DNA from: Convolutriloba macropyga
Taxonomy: Eukaryota
Reading direction: 5' to 3'
Length of the DNA: 64,000 nt
Assembly: GCF_964194025.1 (NCBI RefSeq)
Contig: NC_134471.1
Location: forward strand, 81,406,001-81,470,000
In this document: positions 35,676 through 44,545 of the stretch, piece after piece
Layout of the letters: each line of letters begins with the position of its first letter
How positions within the stretch are numbered: position 1 is the first letter of the stretch
Translations under genes and position numbers: made by a program
The notes under the pieces: generated by a model
Database searches by the model: none
The model's input: the letters and a program-made list of their open reading frames with translations, nothing else
Told to the model about the DNA's origin: nothing

Positions 35676-36549
35676 ATGTCGAACGAGATCCGAGAGCTGA
35701 TATTTCACGTTCTTTACGCTTTTAAGTTAATAATTGGCACTTTGGTTTTCATTGCCAATATTTTTATTTTTACAATTTTTGCTACCAAAAAGGAGAAATT
35801 TCCCTCCGATTTTTTAATTTTACCAAATTTGATGATCGACGCATTGCACGGTTTAGCCATGTGCATACCGTTTTATCTGATAAATTCTAACTTTATGTTG
35901 AAAGGACAACTTTGTTTCCAAACATTCATCTTCTTTTCTTTGGTAATGCTGATTTTGATGACATTAAACAGATATGTGGCTGCTATAAGGCCCATGAAAT
36001 ACAAGTTATGGTTTAACAAGGGCAGAATTTTATTCAGTTTTTTGGCGATTACCTTGATTACTGTGGCTTTATTCTCGGCAGTCGCGTATGCTCTATTTGT
36101 TGCAAAAGTTGTCGACAAGTCAATCGAGCATTATTGCGAAACTTATTACGAGAAGATTTGTGTTCCGACAGGTTGGAAGCTGAGGTCATGGGAACTTTAT
36201 TGTAATTATGAATATAAAATACGCCAGAATTGTTATGCCAGGGAAAAATCTACAAAACGAGCCTTTTTAAACGTCAATTACTTTGTTTTTTACCTGTGGC
36301 CTCAATTTCAGCTCCTTCTTGTAATCTGCAACACAATTTTCATGTGTTTTGTCTACAAAAGAATCTCTGGCCAATTCGAAATAAGAAGATCAAAAACTCA
36401 CTTTCGTAAGTTTTTCATGACAGTTATGAAAGTTTTCCGAAATGATGACGTTGCAAAAAGGAAAACAACTAAGCCAAGCAAAGATGCATTAAAGCTGTTT
36501 CAAGAAACGACCATCTCAGACAATGGGCAAACAACTTCAGAACATACAG
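35676..36549 (+). CDS. Class A GPCR 5' exon A (TM1-TM5 and start of ICL3)
   Basis: GTLVFIAN (TM1), PNLMID (TM2), TM3 Cys and NRY (DRY equivalent), TM4, Cys-rich ECL2, TM5 ending VYKRI; phase-1 donor ACAG|gtactt at 36549 (unspliced ORF stops at 36602). Confidence 0.8.
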
Positions 36550-37068
36550 GTACTTTACAAATTAAAATTGAACAAGGCAGCAATCTTATCGCTGACAGAT
36601 AAAATATTGCAAGCATTATGACACCTTGTCTTGAAACAAACTAATGATTTTGATAGTCTTGAAAATTTTTTCAAGAATCAAAATTATTAATATTATGAAA
36701 ATTTGGAATAATAAAATCCAAAGGCTTTAACTGAAGATTCTAACTAATTATTTCAGGATGACGAAAACAAAATGGTTACATGTAAATTGAGGGCCAATGA
36801 CCAGAAAATATTACTCAAGCCCAGCCGTCAAACTTTTTTGATTTCAACAGCAACAAATATTTGTTGAATCGCTTCTTTGTGAACGGACCCCACTTAGAGA
36901 AATCAATTGTTTACTGCTACCTTAAATCTTTACAGGCTAGAGCCTGAATGGGTGATAAGGCAGCAAGGCACAACGAGGGCAAACGCGGGGAGCGGATATA
37001 AAAATTACTTAATTTGTCATTTGCATCTTAACTTACACCTACATAAATTATCAGTGGCTTTGTGTGTG

Positions 37069-37119
<51 letters not shown>

Positions 37120-37175
37120 GTGGGGGGGATCAAAAATACAAGAATTGTAAAACATAAAACGAACAATGTCGGAAA

Positions 37176-41591: not shown

Positions 41592-42492
41592 ATGGCTGAA
41601 TTTGAATACCTAGTATTTGACATTCTTTATCTATTTAGGCTAATAATTGGAATGTTGGTTTTTGCGTTTAACTTTATTATTTTTTCAATTTTTGCGATGA
41701 AAAAGAAAAAATCGCCCTCCGACTGTTTAGTTTTGCCCAACCTAATGATAGAAGGATTGCATGGTTTGGGTTTGTGCGTTCCTTTCTATTTCCTAGACCC
41801 CGATTGGTTCATGAAGGTTCAATTTTGTTTGCAAATTTTGATTTTCTTTTCGTTGGTTATGTTGGTTCTTATGGCGTTTAATAGGTATGTCGCTGCAGTT
41901 AGGCCTCTAAAGTATAAAATGTGGTTTAAGAAGCGGTTTATTTTCCTCGGGTTTTTGGGAATCACTTTGGTTACTGTTGCTTTGTTCATAGCATCGTCTT
42001 ATGTTTTGTTCATAGCAAAAGTAGTCGAAAAGTCGGTTGAGCACTTTTGTGAAACATATTACACGGAGAGAAGTTACTACGATTACAAAACAGAATTTGA
42101 CCCTCGGAATTATGTGTGGGATATTCATTTTGATTTTAAGCCAAAATATGTCAGGAAACTTAAGACTTTCAGGGAAAGTCATGAAAGATGTCACGAAAAT
42201 ATAACATTTCATGATAAAGCACTACTTAGTGTCGATTATTTTGTTCTCTATTTATGGCCCCAATTTCAACTTGTTTTAGTTATCGTCAATACAGTTTTTA
42301 TATATTTTATCTACACAAAATTATACAATAAATTTAATCCAGGAAGAAAATTTGGATTATGTAAATCTTTGTATAAAACAGTCCGAGATCTTTTCAGGGA
42401 AGAAGTTAGCCTTGAATCAAAAATATCCAAAAACAAATTATCAGTGGAAGCAGTTCAGGAAACAAACTTCATACAGACGTGTTTGCTATCGG
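41592..42492 (+). CDS. Class A GPCR 5' exon C (TM1-TM5), diverged paralog
   Basis: Clearly homologous to A/B (PNLMIEGLHGL, NRYVAAVRPLKYK, YLWPQFQL); phase-1 donor TCG G|gtaggt at 42492. Confidence 0.85.
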
Positions 42493-43919
42493 GTAGGTAG
42501 ATCAATTTTATTAGAGCGGCCATCAAAAATTGCTGCAAAAATGCTGCAAGTGGATTTTGTGAAAATTGCATTTTTTTAAACTGTTGAAATCAGATCTCGT
42601 GCTTCGATTTTTTTTAAAAAAAACTAGTAAATTTAAAATATAACCCAGGGGTTAAATATTACAAGTTTAAAGTGTTATATATAAAATTAGTACAATGTTA
42701 AAAATCAAAATTAGTGGTTCCGTTTTTTAAAGGTAAAAATAACTTGAGTGAAAAGATCTTCAAACTCAATTTTAGGTCACTGATTTTGGCCAACTGTGGA
42801 TCTAAAACGCAAGCCAAAAAGAGTCGGACGGATTGCGCTCGAGCGTCGTGTTGGCTTTGGTTGTATAGCTAGCTAACTTAAGCTTATGAAAGCCAGCATC
42901 ATCGGTTTATAAGGAGGGGTTGTATGCGCGTGTGTAGAGGGTAGTGTGGTGAGAATTCAGATGAATTTTTGGCGTACAGGGGGTTTCAATGCCTATCAAA
43001 AATCAAACTATGCCCTTCAAACCACGATGAACCCTAGTTTCCCAGAAGAACCCAAGATCTTGCAACATTAAAACCCTATCTCGACTCGGGAAGTTCTGCT
43101 TCCCCGGCAGCTCCAGCGATGCATACATTTAGGGCTTAAGCAGAAAATGAGCTACGCAGAGACTTAATTCCCTCGGGTTTTACCAGTTTATAACAGCTCT
43201 TTTGACGTCAAGTCAGATCACTCAAGCGAGCGAAAGACTATTCTAGAACAAAAACAGACAAGGACAAAAATTCCAAAACAAAACACATGATGGCTATCTA
43301 GCTAAGTCTGAATGGATATTCTGAATGGCCTAATCCAATAGGAATGCCAGAATCTTCAAAAAATCATCTTCATTCTAAACCGAAAATTTAAAGTTCGATT
43401 CGAAAATTTCAATTTTTTTTTTTGAAGATTCAATGAACATTATGAAAAACTCGAAACATGATTTAAAGCATATTTGCATTTTAAAAAATGCCTTTCTAGT
43501 TTTTACTGCACACACTAAAGTACTCTTATGTCACTCTGATTCAGTACTGAATTGTCGATTTACTGCTGGAAAATACGGGTTCAGTACTGAAAGTCTATGA
43601 CACTCGGGTCCGGGCGACTACTATAATCTTCAAATTTTTCGAACTCAGAACAGCAATTAATAATAACCAAGTTTAAAAACTTGAAAAGCGGCATCTCAAA
43701 CAAACAATCTTCGCTTTTTTGATGTGGAGATAATAACACGTTTTTAAATAAAACAGCTGAGAGATTTGTAAAATAATTTTTCCTTCCTAACTTATATAAC
43801 CATTTACAGAAAAAAAAAAACGTTTAGCAACTTTTTGGGATAAAAAAACCGAGCTAAACTGGCTAGGGTAAAACTATCCAAACAAATAGTTTAGAAAAGA
43901 ATAGATTGCTGTTTTCTAG

Positions 43920-44545
43920 ATGAAAATCATCCCGATACATCCGACGGCTCATCTTCGATACAAATCACTAATGGACCTGTAAATACGATCAGCCCGTTTA
44001 CTGATAATGACTCAAGCTCAATTCAATCAATGAGTGTAGCCAGTGATTTCTCAAGCGTCTCGTCAATTGGTTCTTCTCAGAACAGTGATCAAAACAAATC
44101 AAAAACGAAGAAAAACAGAAAAACAAACGTTGGAAAAAACGAGAATTTACAACAAACACAAGAGCAGCGCCAGCAAACAAAATACCAAAAAACTATAACA
44201 GTATCGTTCTTCTATGTGGGCTTGGTGTTCATAATTGTTGCCCTGCCGACCTCGCTTTTCAACGCTGCAGCCTTCTGGTATCTCCTAATTATGGACAAAA
44301 CCTCGGAGGTATTCGACATCGGCTTTTGGATCTCACAGACACTCTACGGTCTTGTATTTCTGATCAACCCGTGTCTGTATGCTTCCAGCAATTTGTACGT
44401 CAGAAAGAAGGTACGAAAAGTGATGAAACGATTAAGTAAATGGGTCTGCTGCTGTTGCGGGGTCCAGAAAACAAACTTGCCGGATCTCGTTATCAATTTG
44501 GATACAAACGAAACTAACATAAGCAGCTTAAATACTGAATCGTAA
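43920..44545 (+). CDS. Class A GPCR 3' exon (rest of ICL3, TM6, TM7, helix 8, tail)
   Basis: gttttctag|AT GAA AAT..., phase 1, open to TAA at 44545; TM6 KTITVSFFYVGLVFIIVALP, TM7 INPCLY (NPxxY), basic helix 8, CCCC cluster; exon C plus this exon gives ~508 aa. Confidence 0.85.

Follow-up and report, generated by a model that had tools for sequence, protein, structure and literature searches.

Can a single receptor gene offer several alternative first halves for one common second half? The question is raised by a locus of the acoel Convolutriloba macropyga, within a 64-kb stretch of chromosome OZ077302.1 that we analysed as a whole (hereafter, the window). An earlier note on this DNA had proposed that several first exons, each encoding transmembrane segments (TM) 1 to 5 of a G protein-coupled receptor (GPCR), are spliced to one exon encoding TM6 and TM7. 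The layout held, with selection on the exons and an annotated junction from one first exon (B) to the shared, constant exon; the junctions from the two other first exons (A and C) were not found. We consider the sharing of the constant exon the best explanation for this locus, and a likely one, because the layout is conserved in several paralogous loci, the A-type first exon is under purifying selection without a 3' exon of its own, either kind of first exon can be the sole intact partner of the constant exon, and a RefSeq model uses the B junction while skipping C.

Anatomy of the locus

Three intact open reading frames (ORFs) for TM1-5 lie in tandem on the plus strand, starting at 35676 (A), 37829 (B), and 41592 (C) and encoding 308, 308, and 302 amino acids (aa). 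Their GT donors –ACAG/GTACTT at 36549 and 38702, TCGG/GTAGGT at 42492– delimit variable first coding exons at 35676-36549, 37829-38702, and 41592-42492. Exon A contains the ATG, TM1-5, a long extracellular loop 2 (ECL2), the first part of intracellular loop 3 (ICL3), and a phase-1 donor. The protein encoded by exon B differs from that of A at four residues. Exon C, again TM1-5 with a phase-1 donor, is 46% identical to A. Downstream, a phase-1 acceptor, TTTTCTAG/AT, opens the constant exon (43920-44545, plus strand), which encodes the remaining ICL3, TM6, TM7 with NPCLY, a basic helix-8-like stretch, a CCCC cluster, and the stop codon. All sites are in phase 1, and the three joins are stop-free and give products of 499, 499, and 508 aa; the ORFs, donors, acceptor, and in-frame splicing are as the earlier note had described them. 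By hydropathy, each first exon holds five TM segments and the 3' exon two. Past the stop codon, 44546-46756 (plus strand) is a probable 3' untranslated region (UTR), inside the annotated gene range of the RefSeq protein XP_075244703.1.

The claim that this is the sole TM6-7 exon of the 64 kb was also borne out. A tblastn search with the 3' exon (E<10) found no second one in the window, and a family hidden Markov model (HMM), made from four orthologous or paralogous copies of the constant exon, revealed no hidden one in the six frames of the 64 kb (single match at 1.8e-133, next at E=0.78). The sequence between 18972 and the window end is free of N runs, the nearest assembly gap ending at 18972. 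A, B, and C are tandem paralogous first coding exons with their own start codons, and a single donor phase faces a single downstream acceptor and constant exon, both in the window and in the related loci. The donor phase common to A, B, and C is an inheritance from a shared ancestor, not a coincidence that calls for a chance estimate.

One of the junctions is annotated. XP_075244703.1 (P0021, 447 aa), which falls in the 90% cluster of the A ORF, is an exact match to residues 53-291 of B followed by the constant exon; it uses B from Met53 (37985) and contains the B-specific Tyr199. Its junction, ...SEHT/DENHP, is 38702>43920, with exon C skipped. The locus of this protein on OZ077302.1 corresponds to window 27985-56756 (L011), and its gene range to 37985-46756, from the ATG at 37985 to about 2.2 kb beyond the stop codon, an extension that suggests transcripts behind the 3' end of the model, at least. 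Moreover, at the paralogous locus L009 the RefSeq model consists of the constant exon only (P0014, 183 aa), despite a C-type exon 3.2 kb upstream. The pipeline therefore adds no first exon routinely, and this raises the odds that reads stand behind the B junction.

On a multiple-variable-first-exon plan, the gene would encode an orphan, lineage-restricted rhodopsin-like GPCR. Two kinds of first exon –the A type, present as A and B, and the C type– would provide the start codon, TM1-5, a long Cys-containing ECL2, and the early ICL3. The sole 3' splice site would lead to the constant exon, with the remaining ICL3, TM6, TM7 (NPxxY), the helix-8-like stretch, and the tail. In a transcript begun at A, B, or C, the donor of that exon would be spliced to the constant exon, and the variable exons downstream of the chosen one would be removed as intron. 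We infer that A and C are also used at this locus, and that the exon is chosen through promoters of its own or through splicing from a common leader. The products would differ chiefly in ECL2 and the proximal ICL3, and would have TM6-7 and the C-terminal half in common.

The earlier note counted three variable exons. The three ORFs are indeed intact, but B is a very recent copy of A. A self-blastn of the window displays two head-to-tail units on the plus strand, 35377-37531 and 37534-39684, which are 98.2% identical over 2157 nucleotides (nt). Unit 1 comprises 300 nt of upstream sequence, exon A, and an intron part of about 1 kb that includes a GT/CA microsatellite; unit 2 holds exon B. A and B being recent tandem copies, the locus has two kinds of variable exon rather than three. 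The differences between the units are unevenly placed: 32 of 38 fall within the first 385 nt (about 8%), that is, the 300 nt upstream and the first 85 nt of the exon, and the other six are spread across the remaining 1770 nt (0.34%). Bases that tell A from B early in the exon stand at 35683, 35696, 35711, and 35760 in the A copy. Thus, B combines a near-identical coding body with a distinct upstream segment, and this 5' segment is no nearer to any other fetched copy.

An independent ENA assembly (ERZ25071359) includes a contig of 66011 bp with the exact A, B, and 3'-exon ORFs (P0006 and P0022 for A and B). Another of its contigs, L003, is 95-96% identical to the window, contains one A copy, and lacks unit 2; it is most likely the other haplotype of the window. 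Identity between window 34000-46000 and L003 is strongly mosaic: complete (100%) at 34.0-35.4 kb, it falls to 94-97% across the exons and to 73-86% across the intron between A and C. A collection of 15 billion proteins lacks the exact exon C ORF (41592-42497) but contains those of A, B, and the constant exon from the same-haplotype ENA contig.

Some repeats accompany the duplication. The GT/CA microsatellite of each unit (37050-37120 and 39200-39270) gives rise to spurious ORFs of 126 and 83 aa, and similar tracts lie at 14083-14146 and 28140-28178. An element of about 125 nt at the 3' ends of the units (37378-37502 and 39531-39655) has an 81%-identical copy 13 kb downstream (52416-52545); the element is probably a short interspersed repeat that lies close to the breakpoint of the duplication. 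Each unit begins at a poly-C tract.

Recurrence and selection at related loci

The related loci come from ERZ25071359, except for L009 and L013 (NCBI GCA_964194025.3). The order A-type, C-type, and constant exon is repeated at six further loci or haplotypes (L003, L001, L006, L012, L007, and L005). All parts are intact in the window (A, B, C, and constant exon) and in L006 (A, C, and constant exon). L003 has A and the constant exon intact and one additional G in C. In L001, A and C are intact, the constant exon lacks one A in a poly-A run, and there is an additional partial copy of its 5' end. L012 presents two 1-nt deletions in A, one in C, and an intact constant exon. In L007, A is intact, C has decayed and is interrupted by an insertion, and an intact constant-exon ORF (P0013) lies about 10 kb downstream. 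In L005, both A and C contain stop codons. Finally, L002, L004, and L009/L010 hold only C and the constant exon within the fetched flank.

No TM6-7 exon was found between the A-type and C-type exons at any locus compared. In the fetched DNA of L002, L004, and L009, no A-type exon lies upstream of C, and the sequence flanking L002 and L009 on the upstream side has no match in the window. At some paralogues the constant exon is left with one intact kind of first exon, which can be either: the A type at L007, and the C type at L002, L004, and L009, as far as the fetched flank reaches. A maximum-likelihood tree sets the A-type exons apart from the C-type exons, each as a clade of its own (support 100/99 and 100/100), and places the distant L008 exons outside both. 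Therefore, the split between A and C is older than the spread and duplication of the loci.

Selection has kept the A-type exons. The ratio of nonsynonymous to synonymous substitution rates (dN/dS, omega) is 0.15-0.30 in all paralogous or allelic pairs, with synonymous divergence (dS) up to 0.35, and Fisher tests give p values from 3.5e-5 to 2e-9. The donor position is retained in all six intact copies (A and B of the window, L003, L001, L006, and L007). Since the A-type exon is under purifying selection, has a conserved donor, and has no 3' exon of its own, it would have to use the shared constant exon. C-type exons present omega values of 0.23-0.63, and their donor position is conserved in L001, L002, L004, L006, and L009.

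The constant exon is strongly constrained from TM6 onward (omega 0.06-0.18), and its ICL3 part less so (0.36-0.55). Gene conversion was ruled out as the origin of this conservation: the dS of the constant exon matches that of exon C (0.72 vs. 0.80, window vs. L004), and the conservation is therefore due to selection. Comparing A and C by region, identity is 55-63% in the TM blocks, 22% in ECL2, and 20% in ICL3; ECL2 is the most variable region among the C-type copies too.

A distant paralogue, L013 on chromosome OZ077312.1, has two annotated products. P0085 ('isoform X1', 486 aa) joins the exon at 10001-10898 to a constant exon at 23800-24362, and skips an intact second TM1-5 exon (17513-18347) with a phase-1 donor. 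The second product, of 465 aa, has the same 3' end, and the second TM1-5 exon plus the constant exon give exactly 465 aa. An exhaustive search of donors and acceptors found no GT-AG variant of exon 1 that gives this length. If the coding range does begin at the ATG at 9805, the sole stop-free solution again uses exon 2. The protein cluster of the exon-2 ORF has no NCBI member. Further TM1-5 exons flank the L013 gene at 77-1024 (minus strand) and 32616-33437 (plus strand), one of them head-to-head about 9 kb upstream.

Two other relatives depart from the common structure. At L001:13967-14299, between exon C and the full constant exon, the partial copy of the constant exon's 5' end has an acceptor-like TTTTTTAG, and its ORF stops after 53 codons. 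P0026, on an ENA contig of 39336 bp, is a 453-aa relative with 34% identity that covers TM1-TM7 in one uninterrupted ORF. Thus, some family members have no ICL3 intron, and P0026 could be the ancestral intronless form or a retrocopy.

Weighing the explanations

Several points weigh against the sharing of the constant exon among A, B, and C. The B junction comes from an annotation model, which may rest on spliced reads to a greater or lesser extent, and this model begins at Met53 without a 5' UTR. The last difference between A and B is 279 nt upstream of the donor (at 36270 in A), and short junction reads assigned to B could therefore equally be those of A. Among public proteins, no transcript or model joins A or C of this locus to the constant exon; word-based protein searches, which returned mostly exon-sized ORFs of one ENA assembly and one RefSeq model, gave no cDNA-type proteins with A or C. 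C-type exons evolve faster, with omega up to 0.63 (window vs. L002). At L013, we read the 465-aa product as the second TM1-5 exon joined to the shared constant exon from its length and from splice-site constraints. Single-base frameshifts interrupt some copies, and five of five are at homopolymers (C of L003, the constant exon of L001, and A and C of L012). The species was sequenced from an ultra-low-input HiFi library amplified by polymerase chain reaction, together with whole-animal RNA sequencing (PMC13650328), and these frameshifts may be HiFi consensus errors of the amplified library or real decay.

The alternative that survives best is a gene with one working kind of first exon and relic neighbours. 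Either A/B, following RefSeq, or C, as the nearest donor, would be used, and the other kind would be an intact but silent remnant of an old partial duplication. The RefSeq annotation offers a single isoform at this locus, covering one of the three first exons, and exon death does occur in the family: a frameshift interrupts C in L003, and L005, L007, and L012 have a broken A or C. However, both kinds stand intact side by side in the window, L006, and L001 (bar the 1-nt change in the L001 constant exon). Between loci with both kinds, dS has reached 0.2-0.35 with omega well below 1 and conserved donors, and a silent exon would not hold an omega of 0.15-0.3. Besides, some paralogues keep only an A-type exon intact beside the constant exon, and others only a C-type exon, within the DNA fetched. 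We regard relic neighbours as unlikely, although they deserve to be kept in mind.

A second alternative is that the halves are not joined at all. A and B (and C) could be translated as 5-TM proteins from unspliced RNA, like the ghrelin receptor variant GHS-R1b (PMC3477067), or TM1-5 and TM6-7 could be separate polypeptides that assemble. Beyond the donor, the ORFs do stay open for 2-17 codons before a stop, and in A and B an ATTAAA follows the donor at 12 nt. An in-frame ATG occurs inside the constant exon, and P0014 is a constant-exon-only RefSeq model at a paralogue. Nevertheless, the read-through tails of the A-type ORFs are 3, 5, 17, or 49 aa depending on the locus and show no conservation, whereas the donor is conserved; therefore, constraint ends at the splice site and the tail is intron. 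No conserved coding tail after TM5, as expected for a receptor of the GHS-R1b type, was found among these variable 3-49-aa tails. Moreover, P0021 and P0085 are spliced full-length models. Both the truncated and the split versions seem very improbable to us.

Mis-assembly or retained haplotigs, as the source of the A/B duplication or of a missing second TM6-7 exon, are hardly credible: heterozygosity is 3.65% (PMC13650328), the primary assembly is oversized (1176 Mb vs. a k-mer estimate of 867 Mb), and L003 has a single A copy, but 18973-64000 is gap-free, the 2.15-kb units are shorter than HiFi reads of about 10 kb, the 66011-bp contig of a second assembler has the A and B ORFs exactly, and every independent locus has a single constant exon.

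Exon choice, receptor family and known parallels

Returning to the shared constant exon, the sequences upstream of the first exons offer hints on how one of them might be chosen. The 9-mer GTTTTCCTG occurs only three times in the window, each time exactly 49 nt before a first-exon ATG: at 35627-35635 (A), 37780-37788 (B), and 41543-41551 (C), all on the plus strand. A-type and C-type upstream regions can be aligned over about 80 nt before the ATG and not farther upstream. The upstream block with GTTTTCCTG is kept between the two types in most loci; L004 differs. An AG 6 nt before the ATG is retained in A-type exons and not in C-type exons. These similarities are hints only, and could fit own promoters or leader splicing. 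At L013, the range of the 465-aa product begins upstream of exon 1 (ATG 9805), and this early start would fit leader splicing as well as separate promoters.

The protein looks like an orphan, lineage-restricted class-A-like receptor. Exon C is the sole part of the locus to pass the Pfam 7tm_1 cut-off (36.3 bits, cut-off 30.5), while exon A (19.6 bits) and the spliced P0021 (22 bits) fall under it; the P0021 match crosses the splice junction and reaches the end of the profile. A check of class-A motifs found five plus two hydrophobic segments, NRY after TM3, ALP in TM6 (without the Trp of CWxP), NPCLY in TM7, a basic stretch, and CCCC. Among receptors, Pfam scans gave only 7tm_1 and a nematode serpentine family, and not the Gr/Or families 7tm_6 or 7tm_7. 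Sequence matches in PDB were marginal (V1a receptor, E=0.0015; PAR1, E=0.05). Across 1.84 billion representatives, an exhaustive HMMER search with P0021 retrieved only 61 relatives (E<=0.001). All of those with a looked-up source were from C. macropyga or the ENA assembly, with no functional name, and the family looks small. The very short N-terminus, the long, Cys-rich, and hypervariable ECL2, and the local gene expansion suggest a chemoreceptor-like role.

Clusters of multiple variable first exons are known from clustered protocadherins, UGT1A, GCNT2 (three variable and two constant exons), and UGT2A (two variable and five constant exons) (PMC1885805). In common with them, this locus has tandem paralogous large first exons with their own ATG, same-phase donors, and a shared constant exon. 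It also resembles them in a variable part for recognition of ligand or substrate next to a conserved constant part, and in the birth and death of variable exons (the A/B duplication; decay in L005, L007, and L012). Unlike in those clusters, here a 7-TM receptor is cut inside ICL3, there are two exon kinds only, and the entire unit of variable and constant exons has been copied to many loci.

The insect Gr and Or receptors are a separate superfamily, not rhodopsin-class GPCRs. Within it, the loci Gr39a and Gr28b have alternative large 5' exons and shared 3' exons (PMC2204066). There, as here, a set of alternative large exons supplies most of the helices, one exon at a time, and shared exons supply the final one or more; exons are gained, lost, and pseudogenised among relatives. 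On the other hand, the cut falls after TM5 here and not near TM7, and the matches are to Pfam 7tm_1 (significant for C; weak for A and P0021).

In GHSR, the class-A ghrelin receptor gene, exon 1 encodes TM1-5 and exon 2 encodes TM6-7. It has two coding exons, and its 5-TM variant GHS-R1b arises by intron retention (PMC3477067). Both GHSR and the acoel gene have one intron between TM5 and TM6, and reading through it leaves an ORF of five TM segments plus a short tail. They differ in the number of first exons, one in GHSR and several here, and the read-through tail here is unconserved.

Alternative splicing of GPCRs has been described mostly for N-termini, ICL3 inserts, C-tails, and truncations (review PMC3477067). 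In a search of the full-text literature, no rhodopsin-type GPCR was described with alternative TM1-5 exons that share a TM6-7 exon. Rhodopsin-type receptors are not known to exchange TM1-5 and ECL2 as a whole while TM6-7 and the tail stay fixed. If the layout is confirmed, a third kind of receptor, besides cadherins and insect chemoreceptors, would have arrived at the variable/constant exon design on its own. Nature would also have tested here how much divergence TM1-5 tolerate (46% identity in this case) when the TM6-7 they pack against do not change, and gene counts would understate the receptor repertoires of acoels.

A much wider proposal, which we think rather doubtful, is that acoels have a family-wide diversity system of class-A-like chemoreceptors, with several TM1-5/ECL2 exons per TM6-7 exon. 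In each sensory cell, a stochastic choice of promoter or of leader splicing would single out one exon, as with clustered protocadherins. If true, one receptor per cell and the expansion of ligand range would be achieved inside single genes and not across gene arrays.

Regarding the surroundings of the locus, an Rfam scan of the window gave no match, and a scan for bacterial-type promoters and terminators was empty, which is irrelevant to an animal gene. A minus-strand gene annotated with a 282-aa product has a range covering the whole 28.8-kb locus (27985-56756); the receptor gene appears to be nested in an intron of this large antisense host gene. Farther upstream, a 585-aa uninterrupted ORF at 11284-13041 (minus strand) has a B-box zinc finger match just below the Pfam cut-off (23.9 vs. 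24.1 bits) and may be a single-exon TRIM-like gene.

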